64,000 nucleotides of DNA from Saccostrea cucullata (Eukaryota): the NCBI RefSeq assembly GCF_032062105.1, contig NW_026926606.1, forward strand, positions 1 to 64,000, given 5' to 3'. The translations under genes and the position numbers were made by a program. Positions 2,522 through 58,888 of the stretch are shown here, in pieces. The stretch's first letter is position 1, and the number at the start of each line of letters is the position of its first letter. The notes below the pieces were generated by a model. It had not been told where the DNA came from and searched no databases. It was given only the letters and a program-made list of their open reading frames with translations.

Positions 2522-4172
2522 ATGACGCAATGTGACCTTTGTGAGTCTATTGAGGTAGAGGTACACTGCGATTCTTGTCTTGTCAATCTGTGTAAGGCTT
2601 GTGTTGGAGTACATATGATCTCTGATGAATGCACGGACCACAAACTCATCAAATATCAGTCAAGGAAACCTACTCGTCTCTACCCTGAATGTAAATATCA
2701 TAACAAGCAACACTGCACATTGTACTGTAACAAATGTAAAATTCCTGTTTGTAAAATGTGCCTTGCGTCTGGTCAACATCTGAGTCGTAAGTTGTCAGAA
2801 ATCTTGAAAGTTGTGAATGAAAAAAAGGAAGAAAATAATCAGAGAACGATATGAACTAAATGAGACGATTTATCCAACCTACCAGCACATTGCATCTGAT
2901 GTACAAAATAGAATGAGTCAGTTGAAAAAAATATATGGAGATCTTTCTGCAGCAATAACAGAACATGCTAGGGTCTGGCACACAGAAATTGAAAAACATT
3001 CATTAAAATTTCAAGCCAAAGTTGAAAAGATGAAGAGCACAAAATTACAGGCGCTACAGAAACATCTGGATGAAATAAACAAAAACATATCTGACCTAAG
3101 GAATGATATCAAATCAATTGAAAGGACTATAGATGCTAATGACATGTCAAAACTATTAAGGGTCACCTCTAATGTTCACCTTTACAGTAATCTTCCACAG
3201 AAAATAGCTCCTTCTCTACCAAAATCTATTCCAGGAGAGGTTCAAGGCGAAGAATTCGGTAAACTATTTGGAATCTTATTACCAAGTTCTTTAACATTAA
3301 ATGAAAATGGTTACAGCTTGAAACCCAAAAGGAGATCATCAGAAGCTAGATCCCCTCCTCAAGTCAAACAGCTGCTTGACGAACCAGAGATTGTTACAAA
3401 TATAGACACAGAGTTTGAATACCTAATCAATGTGGCATGTCTGAGTGACAAGAGGAAACGACAGTACTATGAAACTTTTTAACAATAATCAGGGATCACT
3501 ACTCAAGTCAATCAAAACCAAGTCAGGGAACATGCCGTGGGATATTGCTGTGACGAAAAGTGGATATCTAGTTTACGCTGATGTCAGTGATAGAACTGTG
3601 AACATTGTGAAGAATAAGAAGATAGAAAACGTCATCAGACTCCAGAACTGGACACCTCGTGGTGTCTGTAGCACCTCCTCTGGTGACCTCCTGGTTACCA
3701 TGTGTAGTCATGATGACAAACACTCGAAAATTGTCCGTTACTAATGTTCCATAGAGAAACAAACCATTCAGTATGATGATCACAGAAAACCTCTCTTTTC
3801 GGTATATGTATAACTGAGAATAGAAATTTGGATATATGTGTCTCCGAAAATGGCATTAGAGCTATCGTGATGGTAAATCATGCCGGGAAACTGAGATTCA
3901 TGTACACTGGACACACACTTCCTCCGAAGAACAGGCCATTCATTCCACTAGGAATCACCACAGACAGTCACAGTCACGTGTTTACGACAGATGATAATAA
4001 TCACTGCGTCCACAGTATAGATAAAAACGAACACTTCCTCCAATACATACACTGTGAACTGAGTGAACCCGTGGGACTTTGTACAGATTTAAATTATAAT
4101 CTGTATGTTGCTCAGTGTAGAAACAAACAAGTAAAGAAAATAAAATATCTGGCTAAATGCATCAAGGTATAG
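2522..4172 (+). pseudogene. TRIM-like gene copy A (2x B-box, coiled coil, NHL-like propeller), disrupted
   Basis: Four ORF pieces (2522, 2817, 3445, 3828) are collinear with intact copy F. Frameshift in the A-run near 2825, deletion near 3449, TAA at 3742, deletion near 3805. Acceptor ttatgcttcAG at 2491-2492; candidate donor GTAAGT at 1598. Confidence 0.9.
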
Positions 4173-4259
4173 ATAAAAAAAATTATGATTTTTTTTTCTT
4201 GATGAAACTTACCATCGTATGCACATGTATATTACATCGGTGGTTGTATTTATGAAAAT

Positions 4260-4652
4260 CTCGTTTTAGAAATAGTTCATATGAAGAGCATGCTCGTGCG
4301 TATCTATTCAACTGAGATATATAAACGCCGTATGCAGATGATGAAGATATATTGTTACATCAGTAAGGGAAGATAAGGCGATAGAAAAGATAATGTCATC
4401 ACGTTTATCATAGAGCTTGGTTGTTAGATAACCATTAACGTCTTTTTCAAGTAGAGTATCCAAATACGAAACAGATGTGTCAGACTCTGTGGTGTCTTTT
4501 ATCTCAAGCTCACCAGTATATATCGAATTGACAAAGGAATGGAAATTACCATTGTTAATTGACATTACGTCGTCGATATATCTAAATGTTGAGTTGAAGG
4601 CCACAGCAAGTTTTTCCTTCATTTCACGTATAAGATTTTGGACAAATTCTGC
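4260..4652 (-). mobile_element. Penelope-like RT fragment
   Basis: ORF 4308-4622: LAVAFNSTFRYIDDVMSINN..ELEIKDTTES..LTTKLYDKRDD (YIDD catalytic motif). Confidence 0.85.
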
Positions 4653-4929
4653 AGATGATTTTTTTCCCCTATTTATTCATTAGAACCCCACCACACCCCA
4701 TTGTGACCCAGCCCTACCCCTGGGGGCCCTCATTTGAACCAGTATGGCTTGGTACTACTTGAGGATGCCTCAATATCAATATGATTATTATGGCTTTTCT
4801 GTTCTTGGGAAAAAATCTTCCTTGATATTTCGAGGTAAAACTTTTATCTCCAGTTGTGGCCCACCCAACCTACTTCCCTACTCCCCCAATTATGACATGA
4901 ACAGTCTTGAATCAACATTATAAAGATAT

Positions 4930-5025
4930 TGCAATATAATGACGTGAATAATCTTATGTATTGAGTAAAGTCTAATAAATCAGTTTCCGGTTGCATCATC
5001 ATGGTGTTCTGATCTGGTTTTTACA
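4930..5025 (+). repeat. 5' LTR (96 bp)
   Basis: TGCAATATAAT..GGTTTTTACA, directly followed by the PBS; aligns to the 3' LTR with a 27-bp gap. Confidence 0.92.
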
Positions 5026-5061
5026 TGGTGTCAGAAAATTCACATCCATCGCCCCAGAAAT

Positions 5062-8000
5062 ATGGCGCATAAAGGCATTAGAACCCTTCCAGAATTTAAT
5101 CCGACTGATCCTAATTTTGGAGCAAGAGAATGGGAGTCGTACAAGCGTGATTTCCTCGTTCATTTTTATACACTAGAATTGAATGATAAATCCGGCAAAA
5201 GGAAAGTAAGTATGTTGCTCGCCAACATGGGACGTGAGGCCGTCAAAATATATTATTCCTTCACATGGGCACCTGGAATAGAAGCAGATGAAGGAAACAA
5301 CATAGAAGCACAGCTCGGAGAGGATCGCCATGACCTAGATACAGTATTCCGCAAATTCGACCGCCATTTTGGTGTGCACAATTACATGTATCGCAATATC
5401 AAGAGACAGGAATTCTTAGATACTAAGAGAGGTAAGAGCACAACTATGGACTATTTCTCGGAGCTTAAGCGTAAAGCAGAATTTTGTGAATACGGTGAGT
5501 ATAAGGAAGGCTTCATATGTGACATGATTATTAATGGTGTTAACAACAGGAAGTGCTCAGAGAAATTAATGGAAATTCCAGCCGCTAACTTAAATCTAGA
5601 CAGAGTAATTAAGACCTGTCGACAGGTCGAACTAACTAGTGCACATCTGAAAAACTTGGACGCAGAGAACCCAATGGTAAATCTAGCACACATGCATCAT
5701 GAGAAAACAAGGATGAATCGGTGACCAACGAGGGGAGGTATATACCAAGGCACTCATCCATTTTGTATCAAATGTGGCAAATACAATGCGAGTGGAAACT
5801 GTCCGCCTTATAACAAGCATTGTGATTCATATGGACAAAAGGGACATTTTACACATTCAACCTTGTGTGGAGGACGCACCACACCAGTCAGAAATTTTCG
5901 TAGAGGCAGGAGTTGGTTCAGAGGCAGTGGACATGCACCGCAGCAGTCAAGAGTATATTACGCAGAAGATAACGAATATCAGGATACCCAAGAATTGGAA
6001 CAAATATTTGATCAATGTACGTTTCAGGATGTGTGGACAGCTCAAACAGATTCCAGCCAAGAGAAACTAAGTGATTGGAAAGTCATCTTTGACGTCAAAG
6101 ATAGGAAACTTACCCTTGATATTGACAGTGGAGCACAGTGCAACATCCTTTCAAAAACAAGTGCCGATAAATTCATATCGATTGCACCGATTACAGACAG
6201 CAAAGTTATCATCAATGGAGTGAGCAACACAGCAAAAGCATGTGGACAAATCTGCCTGCCATGCAGATACCAAGACAAAGAGAGAACCATAAACTTTCAA
6301 GTGATTGACAATCCTTGTCCTTTACAGCTACTGGGGAGAAAGGACAGCATTCTTTTTGGTCTTATAGCCAGAGTGAACAATGTAAGTGTGAGTGACGTCA
6401 CGGAACAAATAAAGCAAGAATTCACAGATGTTATCGGACAGCAAGTTGGATGTCTGCCTGGCGAGTATAAGATCAAAGTTGACAACACTATAACACCAGT
6501 TATTAACGCACCAAGAGCAATTCCTGTAGCCATTCGTGAGCAAGTGAAAAGTGAGCTTGACAATCTCGTTCGCTGTGGAATTATTACCCCACCCCAGTCA
6601 AAGAACCAACCGCATGGGTAAACAGTATGGTTTGTGTAAGGAAGAAGAACGCTCGTGTAAAAATTTGCATTGATCCATCAGATCTCAATAAAGCGATTAA
6701 GCGTGGGCATTACCTTATGAACAGCATAGACGACATAGTAACCAGGTTACACGGAAGCAAGTTTTTCTCTACCCTTGATGCCAATATGGGCTACTACTAA
6801 ATAAAACTGACCAAAGCAAGCTCCTTGTTAACAACATTTAACACGTCTTTTGGAAGGTACCGATATCTTCGTATTCCAATGGGATTAAAGTGTTCAGGAG
6901 AAGTGTTCCAGAGAGAAATGGTTACTCACTTTGGCAGCATGGAAGGTTTTGAAATCGTGATTGACGATATACTGCTTCATGGGAAGACTCTAGAGGAGCA
7001 CACAAAGAGACTTACGACAGTACTCAAAAAGGCCCGATCAATTGGTCTGAAACTAAACTCAGCTAAGTGTGTACTTGTGAAGCCAGAAGTAGTTTATGTT
7101 GGTCATATCCTCACCGGAGAAGGCGAAAACCTTCAAGAGATAGGATATGAGCAATTCTTGAGATGAAGGATCCAGAGGATAGAAGCGAGCTAGAGACTGT
7201 GTTGGGCATGCTCGCATACCTAGCCAAGTTCATTCCAAGACTAAGTGAACTTACATCACCGTTACGAGAGCTTAAGATTAGAGACCAGTGGAGCTGGGAC
7301 ACGGAAGCTCAACAGGCATTTACTAATGTTAAGAAAGCACTTACCTCAACAGATGTCTTGAAGTACTTTGATGCCACACAGCCAGTGATCGTTACAGTTG
7401 ATGCATCAATGAAAGGTTTGGGAGCAGCAATCCCGCAGAAAAATGGAGTAGTGGATTATGCATCTCGAGCTCTAACACCCGCGGAGCAAAGATATGCGCA
7501 AATCGAGAAATTGTATTGGTTGGGTGTGAATGTTTTCACAAATTGCTGTATGGGAAAGCTGATGTAACCATAGAAACAGACCACAAGCAACTGGAAAGCA
7601 TCATGAAGAAACCAATACGCACAGCACCGATGCGAATTCAAAAAATGATGTTAAGACTGCAGCCGTATGAATTTAATCTCATATATGTGAAGGGGAAGGA
7701 GATCGGATTAACAGATTGTCTGAGCAGGTAATCGTTACAGGAGAGTGACGATGAAATGATGGTTTTTACTGTAGAAACACTGTCGTATACAAACCATGAG
7801 ACATTAGTAGAAGCCACGAAGAAGGATCAGCAATTACAGACTCTGAAACAAGCTATCTGCCAAGGATGGACAGAAAGGAAATGAGACTTGCCACTTGAAG
7901 TCATGCTTGAAGTCATTCTGGGACTTTCGCGATGAGTTATCTACCTACAGTGGGTTAATCTATCGTGGAGAACGAACAGTCATACCAACAGAGCTACAAG

Positions 8001-9010
8001 CCACCACACTGAAGACTATCTACAGTTCTCATCAAGGAATTCTTAAATCAAAACAAAAAGCTAGAGAGCTTGTGTTCTGGCCTGGGATGAACAAACGGAT
8101 TGAAGACGTCGTTAGTAGATGCAGCGCCTATTTGATGCATAGGAACAAGCCACAGAAGGAACCAATGATCATCCATTCAATACCTTCACTTCCTTGGAGC
8201 AAAGTTGGCACAGATCTTTTTGAGTTTGACAACCACCATTTCCTCATTATGGTTGATTACTATTCGAATTTCATAGAAGTTGCTGAATTGGAACGTGACA
8301 CAAGAGCAGCGACTGTCATTAAAATAATCAAAGAGAATATTACTCGTTATGGCATTATGGACATACTGGTAAGCGACAATGGTCCACAGTTCGCCTGTCA
8401 AGAGTTTAAGGATTTCACCAGGGCGTATGGTATTGAACACATAACGTCATCGTCCTTACATCCGCAATCCAACGGCTTGGTGGAATAGACAGTTCAAACT
8501 GTCAAGAACATTGTAAAGAAATATGCAGAATCTGGATATGATATACACTTGGGTCTCCTTGATTTACGCAACGACCCAAGAGATTCTGGAATTGGATTTC
8601 CGATGCAGCGTCTGATGTCTAGAAGAGCTAAAACATTGATACCTACCAGTGACAACCTACGTAAACCATGCATCATAGAGCCGAATCAGGTTTCAACTCG
8701 TCTAATGGAATATAGACTAAAACAGAAGTTCTATTATGATCAGCACGCGAAGCCAAGACAACAGTGTGAGCCTGGCGATTCAATACGCATTCAAACACCA
8801 GAGGGTTGGAAACCGACTGAATACATTGCGCAAACTGAAACTCCACCATCTCATCTTGTAAAAGCAGGTGTTCAGGGCAGAACATACCGCCGAAACAACT
8901 GCAAGTTGATGAAAACGACAGAGGATACACATACAATCCAACAAAACAAGAAATCCTCAATCCTCAGACTATTATTGTTCCAAAGGAGCAGCCGACAAGT
9001 AGTCCGCTAA
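5062..9010 (+). pseudogene. Gypsy gag-pol, fragmented by stops and frameshifts
   Basis: Gag 5062-5724 and Cys/His knuckle remnant near 5764-5870; protease LDIDSGAQCNIL; RT GRYRYLRIPMGLKCSGEVFQ and IDDILLHG; RNase H TVDASMKGLGA; integrase ARELVFWPGM, VGTDLF, SDNGPQF, HPQSNGLVE. Confidence 0.93.
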
Positions 9011-9454
9011 CCACAAATCAAAAAACCATACAACAGAGTGAAGCAACAGACAAACAAAATCCAGTTTTGCCAGTACCAGCTACCAACCAACAAAAAAAAC
9101 GCGTTCGGGTCGAGCTGTTGTGAAACCTAAGTACCTGTCTGATTATACCGTGTGATTCAGTAAAACATAAATCGTTGTAAAAAGGGCATGATAATCCCTT
9201 TATTTGCATGTTCAATTTGTTTACAAATGTGATGCTAAAGCAAATGAATTTCAATTTAGTTCTATGAGATTGCCTAGTCAGTGAACTTTCTAGTCTAATA
9301 TTATGTTGATATTAAGTTACCTTCATTAAGTCCTAAAATGTGATTGTATCTTATATTGTGTGATTTATGAAAATTTAAAGTATTTGATTTTTTTATCTAC
9401 TTAATTTGATACTGATTCTCATCCAAACTATTCTTTAATTTAATTGAAGGGGGA

Positions 9455-9577
9455 TGTAATATAATCACATGAATAATCTTATGTATGACTTATTTTGTAT
9501 GTGAACTCTCTAATGTGTAAAGTCTAATAAATCAGTTTCCGGTTGCATCATCTTAGTGTTCTGATCTGGTTATTACA
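9455..9577 (+). repeat. 3' LTR (123 bp)
   Basis: TGTAATATAAT..GGTTATTACA, after the polypurine tract and before the TSD GATAT; contains AATAAA. Confidence 0.92.
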
Positions 9578-10622
9578 GATATGACCAATCATGCCTTTGT
9601 GGTTTTTAACAAGAAGAGTTTAAAATATTTATCCGATGTGTTCATTCCTATGTAAAACTTTAATTTCATATGTGGCCCCGCCCTACCCCCGGGGGTCATG
9701 ATTTGTACAAACTTGAATCTACACTACCTGAAAATGTTTCCAAATATGTTTCATCTTTCCTTGCCCAGTGGTAATTGTGAAGTAAATTTTAAAAGATTTT
9801 CCTATATATTCCTATGTAAAACTTTGATCATGAATTGTGGCCCAGCCCTACCCCCGGGGATCATGATTTGAACAAATTTGAATCTACACTACCTGAGGAT
9901 GATTCCACATGAATTGCATCTTTGCCCAGTGGTTCTTGAGAAGAAGATTTTTAAAGATTCTTCCTATATATTCCTATGTAAAACTTTGATCGTCAATTTT
10001 GACCCCACCCTACTCCTGGGGGTCATGATTTGTACAAATTTTAATCTACTCTACATGAGGATATTTTCATATAAGTTTAATCTTTCCAGGTTCAGAGGTT
10101 CTTGAGAATTGAGAATAAGATTTTTGCAGATGCTTTTCAATAGAATCCTTTGTAACTTGAATTCCCTTTACCCAAGGATACTTTGTGGCAAGTTTTGTTG
10201 AAATTAGCCCAATACTTCTTGAAAAGAAGTTAAAAATGTTTAAAAAAAATTCAGACAGACGGAGAGACAAACGGACGGACACACGAACTTAAAGACGGAT
10301 GTTGCACATATTGAAATAAAATTTAGTATTTAGAGTTATCATAAAAATATCTAGGTCAGGTTCTGTTTTGGGTATGATCGGACCATTTTGGACGCAATCA
10401 TGCCCCTTTGATTTTTATTTGGGGGAAGAGGGCATAAGTGATTTGCAAACATATCTTGTATAGAAAGCTTTGAGGATCAGATTCTTCACCGAAAATACAG
10501 TAATGTTATATTTCGTCATTATTTTTCTATGAATATCTTTTAATGATAAAAGCTAAATTAATCTTGAAAGTATCCATGTTAACTTATTAATTGTTTTGAG
10601 TAGTTCTGAGAAACATTTTTGT

Positions 10623-10899
10623 AGTCCTGAACTCCAGAGATTTGTGTCCTTTGTGAACTGAATGCTGATGAGAGGAAAGCATTTGTTCAGTTTGTGACCG
10701 GCTGTTCCTCCCTCCCCCTGGGGGGCCTGGCCAATCTCCACCCACGCCTCTCCGTGGCTCGTAAAATGAGAATGAGTCCGGCTACCCTTCTGTGAACACT
10801 TGTTACCACTATCTCAAACTGCCTGAGTATTCCAGCGAGGGGATACTCCGCGATAGACTGATCACTGCTACCCGCGAAAAGCAGTTCCACTTCAACTAA
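10623..10899 (+). pseudogene. HECTD1: Orphan frameshifted terminal exon of a HECTD1-like HECT E3 ligase
   Basis: Manual translation across frameshifts: [83 protein letters not shown]. This matches the HECTD1 C-terminus as recalled, including the catalytic Cys in SVNTC. Acceptor-like tttttgtAG at 10623-10624. Confidence 0.88.
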
Positions 10900-12982
10900 A
10901 TGTGATATAAAGCTGAATCCCAGTGCTCGGTTTCTTGTTTACTGCAGGCTTATCTGTATACTCAGGCTGCCATTATCTAAAGCTTACATATCTAGGGTAC
11001 TAGCTGGGCACTAGTTAACAATTTATCTGTAAATATACGGCCGGTTTATAATGTAATGGTTGATAGCTTTTTGTACTGTGACGATGACATATGCATGCCA
11101 AGAAATCTCGACCGGTTTACGCACTGATAAAGTCAATAAAAGTGTAATTGATGCAAATCACCCATATTCCCCAAACGCTAGCAAGACAATTTACGACAGC
11201 AGATTTCGATTTTAGGGGGGGGGGGGTCATAGGTTTTCAGCTTTCTTAGTTAAAGAAAAATAAACTTGATATATTCCACCATTTATTTCTATCAGTGATA
11301 TTTTTACATTAAAATGAAAATATTAACATAGCCAATCAGGTTGCGTCACACCGGTAATTGTTTTCACTATAAAATTCCATATAGAATAAAAAGTCGTTAA
11401 AAAAAATCTGGTATTTGTTTACTTGAAAAAATATCTAGCAGGAGGTGTTAAACATTACCTTCACACTAGCTGACACACTCTCACACACAAAACGGTACCT
11501 ACACGGCATTTTCTGACTTTTTCCATCTGCAAACAGAGCTACTCTCAAATCCACGTGTTTTCAATGTGTATATAAACATTCCGAGTGTACCGCAGGAAGT
11601 AGCCTCCTAAAATTCCCGGGAAAAAATAGTTCTTGTCAAAAACCTTTATTTGTTCAAAAAGTACATAAAATTTACTAGGCACAGGTACCAAAGTTGTAAG
11701 AATGGCTTGGAAGAGAATAGAAAAACGTCTCAAAAGAAAGGAAAATCAATTTTATATGTATGGACCTACATTTGACTAAGTTCATTTTGATTGGTCAATT
11801 ACCGATGTGATACCTCTACCTATTTGGTACTCCTCTCCCCTCTTGTTTAACCAGGAAATGATGTCAACTTCCGGGAATCTGGTACCCTTTTTCCCATAAT
11901 TCGACGCGCGGTACTTCCACAACTACCAAGTTCATCGTACCCGACGTTAAAATGCTCAGGAAAAAAAACTATATGGAAATACGTAAAAAATTGAAAGCCA
12001 GCTTATTTCTACTGACAAATTAGTTTACTATAATTAATAATTTTTAACTTTCTTTTTCTTTAGCTTACTTTTTTTTTAACAGTATTTGATAAATATGACC
12101 CCCCCCCCCCCCAGAAAAAAAGAAGGGGTGCAAAGGCTTCTAAATAATTAGTTTTGTACCTATGTTTTAAACCCAGTAAAACTTAAGATCCCTCCCTCAA
12201 AACTCCTGACATTAATTGCCTCGCCAACATCTCTCGGGGGAATTTCACAGATTAACGTTAATTCGGCTTTTATTGAGTTCGCTCTCCGGAAAGACTGCTA
12301 AGATTTTCTTGGCATGTACATGTAGCTTTTTGTGACGATGCTGTGCTTTTATACAGTGTAACATTGTATGTGTATAGATCCTTTGGATTTCCTACAACCT
12401 GTGATTATAATACACTGTATGTAGGAAAATGTTTCTTCAAATCTATAATATACTTAGTAGTTATTTTCATTAGCTTGTTCACAAGAAGTGAAAAAAAAAC
12501 ATTTTGTTTAAACTCGTTTCTCAGTTTGATGATATTCTTCACACTTTGTCCTTGATTATTTGCTAGTCATCAGCTGGAAAAATAAAACAAGTGCAATTCA
12601 CTGTAGCTGACATCTGTGACATACTAATGGGGGATGTCGAAGTTAGGCCACTACAAAATTTTGTTGTAAATCGAGTGTTAATTATTGCGTGTGATATGTT
12701 TTCAGGCTATCAGCATAGCCTTTATACCACTATATAAAAATCATGTTTCCATATTGTGTTATGTGAAATCGTTAATTCTGATAAGTGATATGATTGTTTT
12801 CACTGAATATTGGTATTTAAATTTGTCATTTTCCTGACTTTGCTAATAAAGCAAGCATTTTGATTATACTGAGTTTTTTTTTAAAATTCTAAATACGTTT
12901 ATATTTGAGGTAGCTAATGTGTGATACACAGCTTCTATACAAGCCTGGACTAATGGTTTAACTCGAGCTCAATCAGTAGAAC

Positions 12983-27079: not shown

Positions 27080-27213
27080 NNNNNNNNNNNNNNNNNNNNN
27101 NNNNNNNNNNNNNNNNNNNNNNNNNNNNNNNNNNNNNNNNNNNNNNNNNNNNNNNNNNNNNNNNNNNNNNNNNNNNNNNNNNNNNNNNNNNNNNNNNNNN
27201 NNNNNNNNNNNNN
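27080..27213. other. Assembly gap (134 N)
   Basis: Run of N. Confidence 1.
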
Positions 27214-29439: not shown

Positions 29440-31102
29440 TCATTGCAGGTATTTGATTTTTCTCACATCTTGCCTTCCCCACTGAGCAACAAATAGATTG
29501 TCAATTGTATCTTTACACAATCCCCAGGGATAACTTACACAGTCTATGTAACGGAGGAACAGTCCATCCTGGTCTATGATGTGGATACAGTGACTGTTAT
29601 AATCAGCTGTAAGGATGTGACTCTGACTGTCTGTGGTGATTCATCGTAAACTGATAGGTTTACTAATTAAAGAGGTAGGACGAGCATGTACAGTGTATCT
29701 GAATCTCAGTTTCCCGGCTTGATTGACCACCACTACTGATATAGCCTCACTATCAGACACACAGATATCCAGGTTCCTGTTCTCAGTTATAAATCGTTCA
29801 GATCGACCCAATGAATAGAGGGGTTTTTCTTTATCATCAAATTGAAAGGTTTGTTTCTCTGTTAAGCCAGAGTATCAAACAAATTTGTTTGTTTGCCATC
29901 ATCACTGATCATGATAACCAGGAAGTCACCAGAGGAGGTACTACGTACAGATACCTTGAGGACTCCAGTTTTCTAGTCTGATCGCCTCTTCTATCTTCTC
30001 ATTCTTCACAATGTCCACAGTATTATTATTGAAATCAGTATAGACTAAATCTCCACTTTTGGTCAATGCTGTCAGATGGTGTGTTCCCTGATCTGGTACA
30101 GATTGACTTAAGTTGTGGGTAATCAGGATTGTGTATGCTGAAGAGTTTTATACGGTTGCCAGTTCCACTACTCCAGATATTTTCATCATTCAGACAGGCC
30201 ACCCAGTACGCATGTCAATGACAGTCTGAGGTTTATCAAGCAGCTGTTTGACTGGAGGAGAGGATCCAGCTTCTTGTGATTTCTGTGTTGTCTTCATGCT
30301 GTAACCGTGTTCATCTGATGCTAGAGAACTAGACGTTAAGGCTCCAAAATTTTCTCTTAGGATTTTTCCTGGAAACAATTTTGGTAAAGAAAATAGAAGT
30401 TTTCTGGAAGTTTTCTGTATATATGTGCATTTGATGTAACATAAAATAGTTTTGACATGTCGTAAGTGTTTATCATAGATTTTGTTGATTCGATTTCATC
30501 TTGAATGTTTGAAATTTTCTTGTTAATTTCATTAAGATGTTTCTGTAGAGTTTGTAACTGTGTGTTTTTTTATCTCATCAACTTCAGCTTTAAGTTTCTG
30601 GACAAGTTTGTCAATTTCTTTGTGCCAGTCCTCTCCATGTTTTGTTATGCCTGTTGATATCTCTCCATATTCCTTTTCTAACTGACTCATTCTGTTTTGA
30701 ACATTAGATGCAATGTCCTGGTAGGTAAATTGTCTCATTTAATATATTTCTTTCACAAATGATCATGTCTTTCTTTTTACCTAGAACTTGTAAGATTTTT
30801 GATAATTGATGACCTAATTGATGCTTGGATGCAAGGCAGCTGATGCAGACAGGAATGTCACATGGATAACAGTACATTTCACATCGTTCTTTGTCATGAT
30901 ATTTACATCCAGGGTAGAGGGGTGTGGAATTTCTAAGAGAGAATCTAAAAACGTCATGTTTTTTGGATTCATCAGAAACCATGTGTTCTCCCACACAGGC
31001 CCTACACAGTTTGACAAGACATGTATCACAGTGCATCTGTACCACAGCAGTCTCACACAGGTCACATCGCATCACGTCTTGGGAGCTGGTACGGGGGTTC
31101 AT
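29440..31102 (-). pseudogene. TRIM-like gene copy D, multiply disrupted
   Basis: MNPRTSSQDVMRCDLCETAVVQMHC..; frameshifts or deletions near 30725, 30565, 30400 and 30195; ends KIKYLQ*. Shares the HNPDYPQLKSICTR loop with copy E. Acceptor at 31125-31126. Confidence 0.9.
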
Positions 31103-34233: not shown

Positions 34234-36597
34234 TGTCATATAGTGAGACTTCCGCCATAGTGAGACTTCCCCCCGGAAGTCTGTCTATAGTGAGTCTTCC
34301 CCCTGGGGGGAAATATGTCTATATAGTGAGACTTCCGCCATAGTGAGACTTCCCCCCGGAAGTCTGTCTATATAGTGAGTCTTCCCCCTGGGGGAAATAT
34401 GTCTATATAGTGAGACTTCCGCCATAGTGAGACTTCCCCCCGGAAGTCTGTCTATATAGTGAGTCTTCCCCCTGGGGGGAAATATGTTTATATAGTGAGA
34501 CTTCCGCCATAGTGAGACTTCCCCCCGGAAGTCTGTCTATATAGTGAGTCTTCCCCCTGGGGGGAAATATGTCTATATAGTGAGACTTCCGCCATAGTGA
34601 GACTTCCCCCCGGAAGTCTGGCTATATAGTGAGTCTTCCCCCTGGGGGGAAATATGTCTATATAGTGAGACTTCCCCCAATTATGACCATAGTGAATCTT
34701 CCCCCTTCGGTTTTCGATTTGGATTTTATATACATTGACATAATTTAATATTTAATGTATATGCTTAAGGGACCTTTTAACTTTTATAAATTTTATGAAG
34801 TATTTTTTTAAGGATTTGTATTTCATTTTGAAAGTAAATATGCGTGATACTAAAGAAATTACATCACTATAAAATCAAATAAGATGGATTTGGGTTCTAA
34901 TACACTTTAAATCAAATTCTGACTGTCATGCATATTTTAGCAAAGGCACCGGATGCATGAATTGGGCTTAATCCCCCCCCCCTTTTTTTTAAATTCATGA
35001 CCGGAAAAATTGCATGAAAATATGTGCATCCCCTGCTCATCACACCCATACATCAATTCATACAAATATTTTTTCATTTTGGTCGTGTTTTAAAAATGGG
35101 TTTGGACGATGGGATGTTTGAATACACGTATAAAAAATACGTAAAATAAAATATATATATATATATACTGCATTGCAATTGTCACTTATTTGACTAAACT
35201 ATTTTGCACTAAAGTCGGAGATGGTTAATTGTCAATTTTAGTGTGTAGATCTGTTTGTCGCAATTTCATATTTTTACACTTTATACGATGAAAAACAGAG
35301 CGTGCATGTATGAATCAGTCATTACTTGATTGAGATAAGATATTTGAATATGAATTAAAAAAAAATAACAAACATAATTCATTTGTTAACTTCAACACAT
35401 GTGCAAACCAATAAGTTGTTTGCTATTCCACACAAATTGAAAATAAGAATACAATGTTTTAATGCGTGGGGCGAAACATACTGGTAATTTTGAATCAGCA
35501 TGTGCCATTCAACTTTTTAAATAAGTAACAAAAACTCAAGGAGAATCACCATGAAATCTTTTAATTACTTAATTGGACAGCGAGTAGACATAGTCAAAAT
35601 GCACCCCTGAATCATTGACAAGATATATGCATTTACGGACCTTCCATAAAAATCTGAGATTTATGTGCTGCAGTGTAAATTTTTGTCGAACCACTGTTCT
35701 ATGAAGTCTTTAATATTGTAAACGTCCCTGTGAATAAAGTAAATGAAATATTTTCCAATCAATTTTACATTTCAGCATATCTATTAAATGATGCTTAAAA
35801 TTATCCTTAAAGTAGATTTTAACTTTATGTACATGAAACTTTCGATAAATACAGTTAGGAAATAAGAAAATCATAATTGAGATTTGGAATGCATGTTTCA
35901 TTTTTCACATTCGAGCATAATTATTTTATTTCTCGCATAGTCTTAAAGTACTATAAATGTTTCTTCTTTTCGCTACATTTTTTATTAAATCGGTTGAACC
36001 ATATCTAATGTGTAAATAGCTAATGTTTGTACACACAAACAAAACTATGCTATCATTTTTTTTTATTCCAATGCTGAAAACATTCAGAACATTTCATATA
36101 AGTGACTCGTGAACTAATCAAATTATTCGTTATCAATACATGTAAAGGAAAGGGTATACACATGTACATATTATATACATGTATATTATATCATCTCAAT
36201 GTACATGCATATATTATAATGGATATCAAACAGTTAAAACGATATTCAAACTGTTCATGTATATAAAATAAATATATAAATACGTGTACCTATATGGAAG
36301 ATAATTTCGTCATAAATTAACACTGTTAGAATTTTTTAAAATAATAAAACAATGTTCCAGAAACTATAATAAGAGGGGGAAGTCTCGCTATGAATGGGGA
36401 AAGGCTGGCTATAAAGTGAGCCTCCCCCCCCCCGGAAGAACGGATATATATTGAAACTTCCGTGGGGGAAGTCTCACTATAAAAGCATTCTTCCGGGGGG
36501 AAGGCTCACTATATAGCCAGCCTTCCGGGGGATGACTCACTATATAGTTAGCCTTCCGGGGGAAGCCTCACTATGGGGAAAGTCTCACTATACGACA
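34234..36597. mobile_element. Non-autonomous Ginger1-like DNA transposon, 2364 bp
   Basis: TIR TGTCATATAGTGAGACTT / AAGTCTCACTATACGACA. Flanks CCGG (34230-34233) and CCGA (36598-36601). TGT..ACA ends with a CCGG target are typical of Ginger1. Confidence 0.8.
34238..34705 (+). repeat. Subterminal minisatellite, about 5.3 units of 83-85 bp
   Basis: tccgcc at 34251, 34334, 34418, 34503 and 34588; each unit has three ATAGTGAG(A/T)CTTCC motifs. Confidence 0.95.
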
Positions 36598-37010
36598 CCG
36601 ATCGACAGTCGTATTTACTCTTCCATGGTACCTGTTCCCACCTCTGTGTCCAGTGTTTAATCTTTGGCAAAAAAAATGATCTTTTGGGGTTCATTTATTT
36701 ATGTTTCCTATTTCCTTTAACATGCCAAAAAATTATTAAAAATACTGGTACCCCTTATTAAGTTTTTCAGTAAATTACAATATAAAACTGATATTCTTTT
36801 AAAATTCAACAACATTTCAATTTTCTTAATAAATGAATCACAGTATAACACTTATAAATTTTAATGAAAAAGGATGAATAATTTAAAGATAAAATACTGA
36901 AATATTATGCCTGTTACAATACTTCAGCATATTGATATTTTATAGTGATATTGTATACATATGTATATAGACCGCTAATTACAAAGAATGCAACACAACA
37001 AGTGCTCATT

Positions 37011-38693
37011 TCATTGCAGATATTTGATTTTCTTCACATCTCGCCTTCCCCATTGAACAACAAACAGATTGTCATTTGTATCTGTACACAGTCCCCAGGG
37101 ATAACTTACACAGTCTATGTAACGGAGAAACTGTCCATCCTGGTCTATGATGTGGACACAGTGATTGTTATAATCAGCTGTAAGGATATGACTCTGACTG
37201 TCTGTGGTGATTCCTTGTAAACTGATAGGTTCACAAATTAAAGAGGTAGGACGAGCATGTCCAGTGTACCTGAATCTCAGTTTCCCGGCCTGATTGACCA
37301 CCACTACTGCTTCAGCATCACTGTCAGACACACAGACATCCAGGTTCCTGTTCTCAGTTATAAATCGGTCACACCTACCTGATGAATAGAGAGGTTTACC
37401 TTTATCGTCAAACTGAAAGGTTTGTTTCTTTGTGGAGCCAGAGTATCGAACAACCTTTGTTTGTTTGCCATCATTACTGAACATGGTAACTAGGAGGTCA
37501 CCACAGCAGGTACTACAGATACCTTGAGGACTCCAGTTTTCTAGTCTGATCACCTCCTCTATCTTCTCATTCTTCACAATGTTCACAGTATTATTAATGA
37601 AATCAGAATAGACTAGATCTCCACTTTTGGTCACTGTTATGTCAGATGGCGTGTTCCTCGATCTAGTACAGATTGATTTAAGTTGTGGGTAATCAGGATT
37701 GTGGGTGCTGAAGAGCTTAATAAGATTGCCAGTTCCACTACCCCAGATATTTTCATCATTCAGACAGGCCACACTGAAAGGATGTACATACCCAGTACGT
37801 ATGTTTATGATAGTCTGAGGTTTATCAAGCAGTTGTTTGACTGGAGGAGAGGATCCAGCTTCTGGTGATATCTGTGTTGTCTTCATGCTGTAACCATGTT
37901 CATCTGATACTAGAGAACTGGACGTTAAGGCTCCAAAATTTTCTCCTAGAATTTTTCCTGGAAAGAATTTGGGTAAAGATGGTAGAAGTTTTTCTGGAAG
38001 TTTTCTGTATATATGTGCATTTGATGTAACATAAAATAGTTTTGACATGTCGTAAGTGTCTATCATAGATATTGATGATTTGATTTCATCCTGAATGTTT
38101 GAAATTTTCTTGTTAATTTCATTCAAATGTTTCTGTAGTTTGTAACTGTGTTTTTTTCATCTCATCAACATCAGCTTTAAGTTTCTGGACTAGTTTGTCA
38201 ATTTCTCTGTGCCAATCTTGTCCATGTTTTGTTATGGCTTTTGAGAGATCTCCATATTCCTTTTTTAAATGACTCATTCTGTTTATCCATCAGAAGCAAT
38301 GTCCTGGTAGGTTGGATAAATTGTTTCATTTAAAATATTTCCTTCTCTAATAATCAGCTCTTTCTTTTCACCTAGAACTTGTAAGATTTTAGATAATTCA
38401 TGACCTAAATGTTGCTTGGATGCAAGGCAACTGATGCAGACAGGAATGTCACACGGGTAACAGTACATTTCACATCGTTCTTTGTCATGATATTTACATC
38501 CCGGGAAGAGGGGTGTGGAATTTCTAAGAGAGAATCTAACAACTTCATGTTTTTTGGATTCATCATATATCATATGTTCTCCCACACAGGCCTTACACAG
38601 ATTGACAAGACATGTAACACAGTGCATCTGAACCACAGCGGTCTCACACAGGTCACATCGCATCACGTCCTGACCAGTGGTACGGGGATCCAT
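37011..38693 (-). pseudogene. TRIM-like gene copy E; B-boxes and propeller intact, coiled coil disrupted
   Basis: ORFs 38283-38831 (likely start MDPRTTGQD at 38693) and 37011-38126; lesions near 38285 and 38135-38155. Acceptor at 38716-38717; candidate donor CAG|GTAAAA at 38887. Confidence 0.88.
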
Positions 38694-39766
38694 AGTAAGT
38701 TTTTGTGATTTGATTCTGAAACAAAAATGACCAGTTTTTACGAATGTGTACACAAATGAAGAAAATAAATATACAATTATAAATGTAGACAAGTAATTTT
38801 TTTTATTTACAATACCTGGGTATATGTGCATTGAATCTTAATGGGTTCATCCAGTTTTAAAGCATTAAGTTACTTGTATATTTTTACCTGATTTTAGCAA
38901 TGTTGGTCAATCAGTCGACCAATCTCCTCCTTACACGGTTTGTCTCGAGGGACTTTTATCTAGAAGCAGAGCTACCTGTTTTATCTACCTGTCAGGTGTT
39001 TATATTTTCTTGACAGCATGGAAATGTTTAAAAGTTTGATATCTATAGAATTATTTTAAACAAACCATTACATATTGATTTGATTTCATAATTTCTTTTT
39101 TTTATTTGTAATCCAAGGAAAATGTATAGAAAGCGTTCAAAAGGTACTCGGTAAAATTACTTATATTTTGCTTTGCAATACAAGTGGAATTATGTTTGGA
39201 TCTAGCCAGAGGACCTTTTGCATTTTTACATTTTATATAGAAAAGTAAAGATAACCTAAATTCATGTACTAGTTTTGGTACAAAACTATAAAGGAAAGGA
39301 TTAGCTCCAATAAAAATAATGTCATTATTGTTAGAAAATAGACCAGGAAACATGATATTGTAACCAGGTAACATGATCATTTGATTTCAGTACACAACCC
39401 CTTAAGGAGTCTTCTACTTTTATATACCCCCTTCCTGTCAATTTTGAACTATTTGTAGTTAAACGACAGTCTCGAATTTTTTTTATTTACGATTGTATAT
39501 GAATGTAACCACTTGCGAAAGGCTGCAAATTTGGACAGTGAGCTGTGGTATATCTTTTTTGCACCTACTGCGACACGGGACCTCGGTATTTACGGACTCA
39601 TCCGAAGGACCGGTCTCCACATCGTGCAACAGGATTTGAACAATTGAAGAAAGGATCAACTCCTTACTCAGCGACGTAAGCTTTTGTTCACAGTAATTGA
39701 AATTCAAAATTTACTTGATATTCTTAACTACATAACGCTGAATGTTTGCTGTAGATTAGACATGTA

Positions 39767-53124: not shown

Positions 53125-53288
53125 TAAACAATAAAATGTCTTTCTTTGTTTGTTGTTACTGGAATGAACGGTCGCAGCTGTTGCAGAAAAATTTACATAA
53201 CCCGCTTACGCGGGTTATGTATTTTTTCTGCAACAGCTGCTTCCGTTCATTCCAGTAACAACAACCAAAGAAAGCATTTTATTGTTTA
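53125..53288. mobile_element. ~164-bp near-perfect hairpin, Crypton-like terminus
   Basis: taaacaataaaatg..gttgttactggaatgaacgg..gcagctgttgcagaaaaa..acataacccgc[tta]cgcgggttatgt, with the left arm mirrored on the right. Confidence 0.65.
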
Positions 53289-53296
53289 AATATTTA

Positions 53297-53485
53297 CCCA
53301 GCAGGCACACAACATTGAATAAACTTTAAATCAACGTTGTTTTTCTATGTTGATTCAACATTGATTTTATGTTAGATTTTGAAAATTTGTATCAACGTTG
53401 AAGTCTTAACATTGAATCAACATTGATAATCAACGTTGATTATATGTTGAAATATATGATATAGTTGATTCAACATTTATTCAAT
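53297..53485. mobile_element. Left end of an EnSpm/CMC-like non-autonomous element
   Basis: CCCAGCAGGCACACAAC start, then many (AA)TCAAC(G/A)TTGA motifs; no right end seen. Confidence 0.45.
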
Positions 53486-54594
53486 TATTCATTTTGGAAA
53501 GGGGGTGTCATATAGAAGTTATTTTGGCATACATTACGTACATTTGCATGTCATACTCCAAAAGAAGCCAATTACTTTGGAAGGTTTTAAACTAAGATTG
53601 CAAAAGGAATATGTGTGCATAACTAACCGACCGTTACATTGAAATACGTACTGTATATATGTATGAGCACACTTCAAGACAGATGTCTCAAACGGCATAA
53701 AATGAGTTAATTAATTGTGCAGGTAAACATCTCGTCTCTATGTACCTGAGGATCATTCTAAAGGAAATACATCACCGACTTCCTATAAATCTACAAAAAT
53801 CCTTTATTTTTTTTAGAGAAACAAAAACACCAATTTTTATAACAACGTTTTTTTTTAAAAAGACACTATAAAGATATTATTAAACTATTTAAACTGAAAT
53901 ACTATTTGTAAATATCGGCCTCTCGACATCTTTAATCAGCGCAGATTTTAAAGTTATTGTCAATTTAAATTCATTACAAAGACTCCAATTCAATAAAAAA
54001 AAAAATCCATAAACACGACACTGGTATATCGATCATGTGACGCAGATACACAACCAATTTACATAAGACGGCAGCCATTACATACTCTCTTCCTGTCAAG
54101 GTAAAGTTTATATTACTTGAAAATTTGAAATACTCTTGACATTTTCTACTAGTTATAATGAATCTTTGCTGTAGATTAGTCATGCATTTTATTAGTAATG
54201 AATTTACAAAATTGAAAACCCTTTAAAAGAAGAAAGTCTCGTAAAAGGTAAAGCAGAGACATGAATGGAGTGAACTTTATATGTCTTTGAATAAGATACA
54301 AAATGTATCTTATGATATCTCGCTCAACAAAAAAGGGAACTTTGACCAATTAACTACCTTGACACTTAAAATATCTTATTTTGAAAATCTCTTTTAAACT
54401 TAAACAATGTCTACATTATAAAAAAACACATGTTTGAGAGGTCTAGACTATGATTAAGGTACAAACATTCTTCAGTGACCTATGCTGTTATAATTAACAA
54501 TTCCTTTGGTGATGGATCACAATGTGATTTACGTAATCGTGTGATCTTAAAAAATATTCCAACAGAGCAAATGCTATTCATGCATAACGCCATA

Positions 54595-55339
54595 GGAACG
54601 ACTTTACTTTACCAGTCCCCAGAAAAACGCGCTAAAATGTAGTGTCGCCGAAGGCGACTTCAGTATATATGAGATCGCGTGTGCGATCGAAAAAAAATTT
54701 AAATACGAGGTTTTTTGGCCTTTTGACCCCAAAATTGAGTTCTACGGTTAAAAGTTTAGTTTAAAACTTTGTTTTTAAACAAATTTTTGAACCTCGTTCT
54801 CTGAAAAAAATTAATAAATAGTTGTTTGTTCATGGAAAAAATTGACAAAGAATAATTCTGAACGAAGCGCGTGCGGCGCATGCTTAGTGTCATTTCTTTC
54901 GGACTTAGCCAATCTTCCATGTAAACAAACGAAGGAAATGCCTATGAATCTGAATTATTATCTTGGAAAAATTACAGAAAGAACTGAATCTCTTAACTTT
55001 ACTAAAAGAACGATTCACTAACCCTAATCCATCGTATGGTATGCAAGGACTAAGACGTTCAGACGAAATCTCCCGGGCGGATGCTAAACTAACCCTAATC
55101 AGTCGAATAATGTGCGAGGACTAACCCTAATCTCTCGGATGAATGCGAGACTAACCCTAATCAGTCGAATACTAGTGCAAGGACTAACCCTAATCTCTCA
55201 GGTGGGTGCAAGACTAACCCTAATCAGTCGAATAGTGTGCAAATTTAACCCATTTCAGTTGAGTGACGTAGTTGTTACGTCATAGTCCAATCAGCGCGAG
55301 GATCTTGCGTATCTGAAACCGGTAAAGTAAAGTCTACCC
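54595..55339. mobile_element. Non-autonomous TIR element (745 bp, 8-bp TSD) carrying a telomere-motif array
   Basis: TSD ACGCCATA at 54587-54594 and 55340-55347. Ends GGAACGACTTTACTTTACCAGT / ACCGGTAAAGTAAAGTCTACCC. Confidence 0.85.
55017..55255. repeat. Array of ACTAACCCTAATC with two alternating linker types
   Basis: Exact 13-mer at 55017, 55088, 55120, 55150, 55183 and 55213; degenerate copies near 55049 and 55244. Confidence 0.95.
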
Positions 55340-55364
55340 ACGCCATATTCACTGAATTACGTTG

Positions 55365-56171
55365 TTTATCCTGCAACTACCCCTTGCATTGACCTAATAA
55401 AGGTAACCTAATAAACCAAAGCTTTATCCGGTCACTGCCCTAATAAAGCCTCGTGCATGTATTCCGACGTTCTAAAAGCATTGTGACGTCATGTATACTA
55501 CAGTGTTTACGCCATGGCGTCATAGTTTCAACCGCAGAGATGTGCCTAAATCTGTCGAAAATAGCTAGTTTTGGACGTTCAAATGTGCAGAAAATGTTGC
55601 AGGATAAACAAAATACATGATATCTGTCTTGAAATATAAGCGATATTTGGGCTCGGGTCGAAAACGTAAGAGGGCTCGGCAAGCCTCGCCCTCTATCACG
55701 TTTTCTTACCCTCGCCCAAATATCGCTTATATTTCAAGACAGTAACCATGTATTTTATATTTATCCTGCAACTACCCCTTGCATTGACCTAATAAAGGTA
55801 ACCTAATAAACCAAAGCTTTATCCGGTCACTGCCCTAATAAAGCCTCGTGCATGTATTCCGACGTTCTAAAAGCATTGTGACGTCACGTATATTGCAATG
55901 TTTACGCCATGGCGTCATAGTTTCAACTGCAGATACATGTATGTGCCTAAATCTGTCGGAAATACTAGTAGCTTGTTTTCGACGTTCAAATGTAAGAAAT
56001 ATGTTGCAGGATAAACAAAATACATGATAACTGTCTTGAAATAAAAGCGATATTTGGGCTCGGGTCGAAAACGTAAGAGGGCTCGGCAAGCCTCGCCCTC
56101 TATCACGTTTCCTTACCCTCGCCCAAATATCGTCTATATTTCAAGACAGTAACCATGTATTTTATATTTAT
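55365..56171. mobile_element. Head-to-tail dimer of a ~395-bp Crypton-like element
   Basis: Units start tttatcctgcaac at 55365 and 55760. Internal inverted gttgcaggataaa and a ~145-bp terminal hairpin centred on gagggctcggcaagcctcgccctc. Confidence 0.8.
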
Positions 56172-57196
56172 TATCTGTACTAATAGTTTTTGCATTAGAA
56201 TGACAAAGGAAATGCATATGCGTACTATTGTGCTCGTCATGATTCATAGCAATAACTGATGTTATCAGTTCCCATGCCTTTACAACAACTACACTTTATT
56301 TCTGATGCATATAACGAAAAGATTTTGTATTGATACTTGCATATTTTTCATTCAATTTAGTGTCAATAAAATGCAAGACAATGTCTTTAAAGTGTATGAA
56401 AAATAAGTGTTCCTTTTAGGTGTAAAAATGTACGAAACTTCAGTGATTTTTTGCTAATTACATTTACATGTATACGATTTCCCTCACAGCTTACAATAAA
56501 AATATATAAATATAAATAACTCTAACTTAATTACCATTTTCATTATTTTAATATTTTCTTCTTGTGCTTTAAAGCTATAAATTTCATTACATTTTAAATA
56601 GAGAAACGATGTAATTAATTCATTCAAATAAAATGATATTTTAACAGAGTTGTTCGTTTCACTGTGAAAACAAGAGAAAAAAAGTGTTATTTTCGAAGTG
56701 AAGATATAAAATTATCAAACTGTCCTTATCTTTACGGTTTACAATACTCCCTATGAGATATGGTATAAACACATTTCCCAAGCCAACGCCAGATAATGGG
56801 CGATAGGGGATACACCCCCACCCCACCCTCGCCTTTAAAAACAAAGAAACAAAAAAAAAAATCCAATCATGTTTCGTGAATATTTTCATTTTCATTCCTA
56901 CTTTACCCTCTTGACAAAAAACTACAAAACATTATTTTAAAAAATGATAAAACAAACTGTTTCCAATATGAGAGCAATTGCATTTAGGGAGTCATAATTG
57001 CAAATATAGCTACAGATTCATTGGGGTACAGAATCATTCACATGGGGATAAAACCTGAACTATAACTATCAAATATCACAATAAATAATTATACATTTTA
57101 CAACCAATTTAAGTTAGTAAAACATTTTCTCCTACAAAAATTTTAAAATAATTTTAAACTTCAACCGATTTATATTTCAGAGTTATCAGTTTAAGT

Positions 57197-58888
57197 ATGG
57201 ATACTGCTACCAGTGCCCCGGAAATCACGCAATGTGACCTTTGTGAGACTGTTGAGGTAGAGATACACTGTGATTCCTGTCTTGTCAATCTCTGTAAGGC
57301 TTGTGTGGGAGCACACATGATCTCTGATGAATCCAAGGATCACAGACTCCTTAAATATCAGTCCAGGAAACCTACCCGCCTCTACCCTGAATGTAAATTT
57401 CATAACAAGCAACATTGCACAATGTACTGTAACAAATGTGACATTCCAGCGTGTAAAAAGTGTCTTGCATCTGATGAACATGAAACTCATCAGATATCAG
57501 AAATCTTAAAAGTTGTCAATGAAAAAAAAGATAAATTAATCAAAGAACGAAATGAATTATATGAGACAGTTTACCCCACCTACCAGAACATTGCCTCTGA
57601 TGTACAAAGTAGAATGAATCAGTTAGAAAAGGAGTGTGGAGTTCTTTCTTCAGCAATAGCAAAACATGGAATGGCCTGGCACAGAGAAATTGACAAACTT
57701 TCAACAAAACTCAAAGCTGAAATTGATGAGATGAAAAATACACAGCTACAAACTCTACAGAAACATCTGGATGAAAGAAACAAGAAAATTTCTGACATTA
57801 AGAATGAAATCATTTCAATTGAAAGAGCAATAGATGCTAATGACTTGTCGAAACTATTTAATGTAACATCCAATGCACATTTATACAGTAATCTTCCACA
57901 AAAAATTGTTCCTTCTCTGCCAAAATTCATTCCTGGAAAAATACAAGGAGAAGAATTCAGTAAAGTATTTGGAGCCTTATCATCAAGTTCTTTAACATCA
58001 GATGATCATGGCTACAGCATGAAATTAATAAAGCACCAGAAGCTGGATTCTCTCCTCCAGTCAAACAGCTGCGTGACGAACCAGAAATTGTAACAATTAT
58101 AGAAACTGGGTACGAATACCTTATCAATGTAGCCTGTCTGAGTGAAGAAGAAATCTGGACAAGAGGAAACAACAGCACTATGAAACTTTACAGCATCAAT
58201 CAGGGATCACTTCTCAAGTCAATCAAAACCAAGTCAGGGAACATACCATTGGACATTGCAGTAACGAAAAGTGGAGATCTAGTTTACACTGATGTTAGTG
58301 ATAGAACTGTGAACATTATGAAGAATAAGAAGATAGAAAACGTCATCAGACTCCAGAACTGGACACCTCGAGGTGTCTGTAGTACCTTCTCTGGTGACCT
58401 CCTAGTTACCATGTGTAGTCATGATGACAAACAATCAAAAATTGTCCGTTACTCTGGCTCCACAGAGAAACAAACCATTCAGTTTGATAATCAAGGAAAA
58501 CCTCTCTATTCGCTTTACACGTGTATAACAGAAAATAGGAATTTGGATATTTGTGTATCTGACAATAAAGTTAGGGCTGTAGTTGTGGTCAATCATGCTG
58601 GGAAACTGAGATTCAGATACACTGGACATACGCCTGCTCCGAAGAACAAACCATTCATTCCACTTGGAATCACTACAGACAGTCAGAGTCACATTCTTAC
58701 AGCTGATGATAACAATGACTGTGTCCACATCATAGACCAGGATGGACACTTCCTCCGCTACATAGAATGTGGTTTGAGTGATCCCCGTGGGACTTTGTAC
58801 AGATATAAATGACTATCTGTATGTTGCTCAGTGGAGAAACAGACAAGTAAAGAAAATCAAATATCTGGGTAAATGTATCACGATTTAG
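57197..58888 (+). pseudogene. TRIM-like gene copy G with two frameshifts
   Basis: ORFs 57197-58093 and 58180-58812. Small deletion near 58030 and an extra C in atccccgtgg near 58785; ends KIKYLGKCITI*. Acceptor at 57179-57180. Confidence 0.88.

Follow-up and report, generated by a model that had tools for sequence, protein, structure and literature searches.

The first 64,000 nt of contig NW_026926606.1 of the oyster Saccostrea cucullata (NCBI RefSeq assembly GCF_032062105.1), the whole stretch that we analysed and hereafter call the window, carry seven paralogues, A to G, of one gene, which we located by six-frame translation and tblastn. The gene encodes two B-boxes, a coiled coil and an NHL propeller, and it belongs to a family that combines a constant propeller frame with a diversifying face and with turnover of its copies. 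An initial annotation of the window had listed seven paralogues with shared core motifs and differing loop variants, all of which we found in place.

Selection on the top face of the propeller

We aligned 42 intact, top-scoring paralogues of the source genome. To these we applied our own GY94 codon site models, with branch lengths kept in proportion to those of M0 and with naive empirical Bayes, rather than those of PAML; broken copies, read with X at their breaks, were excluded. Model M2a was compared with M1a (twice the log-likelihood difference, 2dL = 857) and M8 with M8a (2dL = 714), and the positive class held 5-6% of sites with omega (dN/dS) of 4.4-5. When the propeller was given its own tree, omega was 6.5 and the same 21 sites were recovered. 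Overall, 21 propeller sites were selected with dN/dS of about 4-6, corresponding in copy C to residues 309, 310, 327, 329, 352, 354, 370, 394, 409 and 413 in the first half and 444, 446, 462, 463, 492, 494, 509, 533, 535, 550 and 551 in the second. All 21 lay in d-a or b-c loops (hypergeometric test, P value = 5e-10), the loops that define the top surface of an NHL propeller (PMC4015489). Each of the 12 top-face loops carried selected sites, while the bottom loops carried none and were conserved (entropy 0.33 versus 2.94). The initial annotation had placed the variable positions on the top face and had proposed site models as a check; in the structural model of C these positions were indeed confined to the top-face loops rather than scattered, with dN/dS above 1.

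The signal held on gap-free columns, with F61 codon frequencies, with half-propeller trees and with variable synonymous rates. Simulations with omega at or below 1 and extreme recombination or conversion reached a 2dL of at most 49 and an omega of at most 2.2, compared with 776 and 6.5 observed. The selected positions (hot sites) held 10.1 distinct residues on average, compared with 4.8 at neutral sites, and up to 18 residues per site. Because four-fold diversity flanking the hot codons was not raised (0.062, versus 0.060 elsewhere), a local mutation hotspot or greater age of the loops was ruled out. We do not claim positive selection in the B-boxes and coiled coil, where a 2dL of 43 falls within the false-positive range of recombination. 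Tyr, Trp and Arg were enriched at the hot sites, and a residue count gave the top loops a near-neutral net charge (-0.7 ± 3, range -9 to +7).

Moreover, the pattern extended beyond this alignment. All of 79 further proteins had unique faces, with a median identity of 0.19 at hot sites versus 0.88 in the frame. The same positions were variable when Saccostrea echinata was analysed alone, and in a second clade (48% identity; Magallana, C. virginica and O. edulis) 14-18 of the 21 hot positions coincided with those found here.

Face evolution followed two regimes, however. The initial annotation had treated the face as hypervariable across all paralogues; this stands for the C-like clade but not for the lineage of F, A and G, whose face is conserved, and the loop comparison on which the claim was built mixes the two regimes. 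In A and in G, 16 of 19 hot sites agreed with F, and 13 of 20 agreed between D and E, so the seven copies are not seven independent faces. F also shared 19 of 20 hot residues with a fourth copy elsewhere (L032) at a synonymous distance of 0.165, and in this four-copy lineage the hot residues were as conserved as the rest of the propeller. Similarly, within four distant clusters drawn at 90% identity, variants fell outside the hot sites. The C-like clade was different: its faces were randomised even between copies 93% identical elsewhere, and flank-sharing copies of the two Saccostrea species had a hot-site identity of 0.22. This contrast, with some lineages holding the hot positions fixed and others changing them fast, is the behaviour of specificity determinants. 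Hot sites were not linked among distant paralogues, even within a loop, which rules out loops persisting as intact cassettes over long times.

Protein architecture and known relatives

A Pfam search identified two B-boxes (PF00643, two stretches, E value = 4e-11 in C), with their zinc ligands kept, and an NHL domain, as the initial annotation had described. A RING was found neither by the Pfam search of the proteins nor by a RING pattern run on all six frames of the window, nor was one listed by Pfam for any of the top 120 homologues. Filamin had no Pfam match either, and the linker measures only about 57 aa. In PDB sequence searches, residues 5-235 aligned with the B-box/coiled-coil regions of TRIM28 and TRIM3, and the propeller matched the NHL domains of TRIM3 and TRIM2 (best E value, 2e-18). 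The AlphaFold (AF2) model of residues 290-562 of C had a pLDDT (predicted local distance difference test) of 97 and six four-stranded blades, and its best Foldseek matches were again the TRIM2 and TRIM3 NHL domains (template modelling score, about 0.8). The C-terminal domain is therefore NHL and not B30.2 (PRYSPRY), and the coding part is one exon. The proteins appear to be cytosolic, since their open reading frames (ORFs) start directly with the B-boxes and Pfam shows no module of membrane or extracellular type.

The homologues were oyster proteins, mainly from S. cucullata and S. echinata, with arbitrary RefSeq labels ("TRIM2/3/55/71-like"). Some annotated relatives measure 770-980 aa, probably with extra propeller sequence, and may represent tandem copies merged into one gene model; a few other matches were very long and multi-repeat. 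In echinoderms, a RING is often retained in related clusters.

Among known proteins, TRIM2 and TRIM3 (and also TRIM71/LIN-41 and Thin) share the B-box, coiled coil and six-blade NHL propeller. The oyster family differs from TRIM2/TRIM3 in having neither RING nor filamin domain, in being about 22% identical to them, in its one coding exon and in its hundreds of paralogues with a hypervariable top face, whereas that of TRIM2/TRIM3 is conserved. The TRIM (RBCC) E3 ligases in general carry an N-terminal RING, which the oyster family is missing, although it has the B-boxes and the coiled coil. Drosophila Brat and Caenorhabditis elegans NCL-1 have the same RING-less layout of two B-boxes, coiled coil and NHL; their sequence match to the oyster family is weaker than that of TRIM2/3. 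Brat, the product of a single-copy gene, regulates by binding RNA, and its top face, which is the ligand surface (PMC4015489), is electropositive; by residue count the oyster face is near neutral, and it is paralogue-specific. The comparison with Brat and TRIM71 made in the initial annotation is therefore apt for the location of the face and appears less so for its charge.

Other known systems resemble the family in their mode of evolution. The teleost finTRIM and the TRIM5alpha groups show lineage-specific TRIM expansion, constant N-terminal modules and positive selection on a C-terminal recognition surface (PMC2657112). Positive selection in the oyster family is likewise concentrated on the ligand face, but finTRIM/TRIM5alpha use B30.2/PRYSPRY and keep the RING, and the finTRIMs are virus-induced, while the oyster family is RING-less, built on NHL and, by motif count, about ten times larger than the finTRIMs. 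The zebrafish NLR-B30.2 genes number in the hundreds, most of them on a single chromosome arm, and show gene conversion, positive selection and low synonymous divergence of the recognition domain (PMC4852459); their domains (NACHT, LRR and B30.2) are unrelated and include a built-in signalling module, whereas the oyster proteins have no evident effector domain. By analogy, the oyster family appears to work like the finTRIM, TRIM5 or NLR-B30.2 repertoires, on an NHL scaffold.

Probable gene conversion, family layout and the array in the window

We compared copies with near-identical flanks. In two such pairs, about 1,480 nt of upstream sequence held 0 and 1 substitutions and about 1,495 nt of downstream sequence held 2 and 16, yet the coding sequences were different at 27-30 positions, in short patches, many of them around the loops, and most of these differences matched states present in other paralogues. 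In the closest pairs, 7 of 14 hot-codon changes involved two or three bases, versus 19% expected. There were also well-supported tree conflicts between gene segments; approximately unbiased (AU) tests between segment trees are biased to each segment's own tree, so we used well-supported split conflicts only. Furthermore, copy G is a mosaic, and nine of nine S. echinata propeller frames were nearer to conspecific copies than to S. cucullata copies. These sequence comparisons support short-tract gene conversion among paralogues alongside duplication and loss, although the patches between near-identical copies could be assembly chimaeras.

Synonymous divergence of the propeller frame was 0.05-0.09 within and between Saccostrea species (0.07 between species; consensus, 0/144 sites) and 0.12-0.14 to Ostrea, compared with 0.3-0.5 in the B-boxes and roughly 0.27 in a host exon, the last being a rough estimate from identities. 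The F lineage had no synonymous dip. Codon bias was ruled out as the cause, since four-fold base use was even, and neutral conversion cannot lower cross-species divergence under the species baseline; the conserved synonymous sites of the propeller across species are thus unexplained. An attempt to calibrate neutral Ostrea-Saccostrea divergence with a host exon obtained no match. The zebrafish NLR-B30.2 family has similarly low synonymous divergence within species (PMC4852459). The patchy differences, the excess of multi-base codon swaps and the low propeller divergence together led us to consider, tentatively and as a possibility that we rate well short of even, that the family is a germ-line combinatorial diversifier, in which short conversion tracts would shuffle loop residues between the hundreds of propellers, and frame nucleotides, including synonymous sites, would be selected for exchange competence. 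If true, this would be an antibody-like intracellular repertoire on an NHL scaffold in oysters.

The assembly holds 799 matches to a degenerate blade-5 motif (control, 2) and 320 to a near-exact 20-mer from the C-like clade, counts that take in pseudogenes and possibly haplotigs. Flanks were common only within small groups of copies. A transposon-borne family was ruled out, as there were no shared element ends or flanks and the duplication units carry host exons instead. We sampled 11 loci (L061-L071) from the larger-scaffold assemblies of S. echinata and Ostrea edulis, and eight of them lay antisense inside unrelated housekeeping genes (ATR, PSME4, EFL1, Sgf11 and TPR proteins); the nesting is intronic, with host exons visible on both sides in three cases. 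A comparison with empty sites for these nested copies was swamped by repeats. The nine S. echinata loci were spread over a single scaffold at 19-33 Mb; the four between 19 and 22 Mb share one orientation, and the five between 27 and 33 Mb have the opposite one. At a single S. echinata locus, a gene for a Crypton-like tyrosine recombinase (DUF3504; L068:1604-3118) lay upstream of the family member, at a distance of about 7 kb. In the source genome an EFL1 exon has been co-duplicated into about nine copies, most of them broken (contigs C17847, C1837, C2638 and C885), and family genes lie on at least two of these contigs, C17847 and C1837. The window itself holds an orphan, frameshifted C-terminal HECT exon (10631-10896, forward strand; PF00632, split over two frames), which is probably a host-gene fragment carried by segmental duplication and not a partner ligase. 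The co-duplicated EFL1 exon and the orphan HECT exon fit local segmental duplication.

Only C and F kept an open reading frame among the seven copies of the window. Copy C (23481-25169, reverse strand; 562 aa) is a member of the hypervariable clade, with B-box1 at residues 14-50, B-box2 at 67-99, a coiled coil at about 105-236, a linker and the six-blade NHL propeller at 294-561. Copy F (48110-49780, forward; 556 aa) represents a divergent lineage with a conserved top face. Its relative A (2522-4172, forward; 91% nucleotide identity to F) is a pseudogene with frameshifts near 2829, 3447 and 3806 and one in-frame stop, and G (57197-58888, forward), with frameshifts near 58032 and 58782, carries an F-type face on a partly C-like, mosaic backbone. 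The C-like pseudogene B (14582-16289, reverse) has a frameshift near 15369, six in-frame stops and a 33-nt insertion. D (29440-31102, reverse) is a heavily decayed pseudogene, sister of E, with eight frameshifts and two stops, while E (37011-38693, reverse) has lost 1 nt near 38285, where a stop follows directly, and 2 nt near 38138, its propeller frame remaining open. Because the breaks in A, B, D, E and G lie mostly away from homopolymers, these five are probably real pseudogenes. Birth-and-death turnover, as the initial annotation had it, is thus visible in five dead copies of seven; as the mode of evolution it is incomplete, since gene conversion appears to contribute besides duplication and loss. 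The seven copies form a local cluster in decay. Most of this small part of a very large oyster family is dead, and interest rests in the whole family rather than in this window.

The two N runs (27080-27213 and 42823-43050) are intergenic, neither in nor adjoining coding sequence, and therefore no reading frame crosses them. Both sides of the first gap were collinear with an ungapped paralogous stretch (19022-20520), as were those of the second with 46180-47408, and this collinearity supports the assembled order. An F-type upstream region spans the second gap (41247-43180), yet no gene copy follows it; deletion or collapse of an eighth copy may explain this.

The rest of the window holds repeats. 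A decayed Ty3/gypsy-type long terminal repeat (LTR) retrotransposon lies at 4900-9580 (forward strand), with gag, protease, reverse transcriptase, RNase H and integrase in broken frames and LTR-like direct repeats near 4959-5025 and 9511-9577 (92.5% over 67 nt). Tandem arrays of 142-168 bp units occur at 9644-10062, 17553-18311, 44147-44702 and 50896-51685, one of them ending in a short microsatellite; they resemble bivalve Helentron-associated satellites, and a 272-aa ORF at 50775 is a read-through of one of them. Further repeats are a young 85-bp tandem array (34234-34679, 97% identical), a 63/30-bp array with telomere-like seeds (55067-55242) and a 407-bp unit present twice at 55365-56171 and again at 60497-60896.

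Expression and a candidate recognition repertoire

An upstream block of roughly 150 nt, with ETS-like, TATA-like, E-box, GATA and YY1-like motifs, was common to 29 of 41 paralogues and terminated in a splice donor. In the window, homology points to 26098-26370 (reverse strand; E-box and GATA-like motifs, candidate splice donor near 26152) as the probable promoter of C with its short non-coding exon 1, and to corresponding regions upstream of B (approximately 17050-17330, reverse; 76% identical to 26098-26352) and of E (38850-39020, approximate limits, reverse). Motifs resembling the family promoter and exon 1 also occur at 53990-54110 (forward), about 3 kb upstream of G, as a candidate first exon. 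The family was found in polyA RNA of a related organism (tissue not specified). RNA reads ended at the start codon, depth being zero just upstream of the ATG, and loose read ends resembled the upstream block in one of two RNA runs, with a consensus agreement of only 0.53; the first exon therefore appears to be non-coding and the proteins RING-less. A search for a RING on an upstream exon found none; the conserved upstream exon is short and apparently non-coding. Because 75-79% of the aligned reads continue unlike C, we attribute them to its paralogues. Reads from an expressed paralogue (about 110 and 69) carry a 75-nt tandem duplication at 24245-24319, in the linker immediately ahead of blade 1.

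The expansion of TRIM/B-box genes in bivalves was already known in outline, and "TRIM2/3-like" genes recur in oyster disease studies, where they were treated as generic RING E3 ligases (PMC9892467, PMC6971885 and PMC9437489). These genes include members of the present family (three accessions verified). A sequence-verified member, XP_022288810, was higher in Perkinsus-tolerant families of C. virginica (PMC9892467 supplement), and TRIM-annotated genes recur among genes for resistance to Pacific oyster mortality syndrome (PMC6971885). Links in other oyster studies are to TRIM genes by name only. A literature search, with most subscription journals outside its coverage, found no paper on the family's missing RING, variable face, selection or conversion.

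We consider it probable, at roughly 0.64, that the family is a diversifying cytosolic recognition repertoire of RING-less TRIM-NHL intracellular modules, which would bind repetitive foreign surfaces by avidity and act through an effector in trans. The analysis shows hundreds of paralogues, each with a near-unique face on a constant six-bladed frame, and frequent gene death; it supports short-tract conversion that swaps loop variants among them and homogenises the frame, with some lineages (F/A/G) leaving the exchange pool and keeping a fixed face. Under the proposed model, as in TRIM proteins, the coiled coil would dimerise and B-box2 would build higher-order assemblies. Avidity could then turn weak face contacts into capture of repetitive foreign protein surfaces, such as viral capsids and intracellular parasite or bacterial proteins, and, with no RING, action might come from target trapping or from recruitment in trans of a ligase or autophagy partner. 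Several points weigh against this reading. No ligand or phenotype is known for any family member. The codon models were our own implementation, run on the top-scoring intact copies, and conversion inflates omega. Upstream of the paralogues there was no enrichment of interferon-stimulated response element (ISRE) or NF-kB motifs, and the RNA evidence for the family does not extend to transcription of C or F. Two other verified C. virginica members fell in a challenge-correlated, non-immune co-expression module (PMC9892467), and expression differences between oyster families may reflect presence or absence of copies.

The rival readings differ mainly in what the face would bind. It might track an endogenous conflict partner (the Gag/capsid of LTR retrotransposons or other germ-line selfish elements), with the same mechanism and a different target. 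TRIM5 recognises retroviral capsids, the genome is rich in mobile elements with a Ty3/gypsy-type element inside the array itself, and the selection pattern would be identical to that for pathogen targets. Yet in a genome so full of repeats a neighbouring retroelement proves nothing, and the presence of the family in polyA RNA of undetermined tissue and its tie to parasite tolerance in C. virginica weigh against this reading, which we regard as unlikely. We find it somewhat harder still to credit that the paralogues are host-directed substrate adaptors or decoys, each binding a different oyster protein and passing it to, or shielding it from, a RING/HECT ligase, with diversity as sub-functionalisation. 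The missing RING, the fixed face of older lineages and the allelic variants of distant members, which vary off the hot sites, would suit such a role. Host substrates, however, do not change fast enough to explain faces randomised between flank-sharing copies of two Saccostrea species and between copies that are otherwise nearly the same, or a window in which most copies are dead.

Sequence-specific binding of diverse viral or host RNAs, as by Brat or LIN-41, seems improbable. Brat has the same domain order, the top face binds RNA in Brat and LIN41, and Arg and aromatic residues are common at the hot sites; the net charge of the top loops is nevertheless unlike the electropositive face reported for TRIM-NHL RNA binders, and RNA chemistry is too limited to need so many residues per site. 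The near-neutral, Tyr/Trp/Arg-rich face fits protein binding better. Hypervariable faces and conversion are also seen in allorecognition-type systems, but a role in self/non-self or reproductive recognition (allorecognition, transmissible tumour cells or gamete compatibility) is very improbable, as hundreds of dispersed loci do not suit a compatibility locus and the proteins appear cytosolic, judged from Pfam and the ORF start rather than from a dedicated signal-peptide test. That there is no selection at all, and that relaxed surface loops with conversion, alignment error or chimaeric assembly produced the pattern, is largely refuted. Conversion is present, multi-nucleotide codon changes are in excess, and the assembly is fragmented and may contain haplotigs; the bottom loops are conserved, however, the recombination simulations fall about 16-fold short in 2dL, the number of distinct residues is about double that at neutral sites, and the same positions are variable in separate assemblies of four genera.

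These results matter for how oyster resistance is understood. The "TRIM2/3-like" genes that recur in studies of herpesvirus and Perkinsus resistance have been discussed there as ordinary ubiquitin ligases; the family described here is missing the ligase domain, and its behaviour is that of a receptor repertoire with a predicted, defined binding face of 21 positions. It is possible to type these faces, to relate them to resistance in breeding lines and to employ them as ligand baits, which makes testable how bivalves reach specific intracellular recognition without adaptive immunity. If the recognition reading is true, the NHL propeller would join Ig, LRR, B30.2 and the C-type lectin as a scaffold for recognition diversity on a mass scale.

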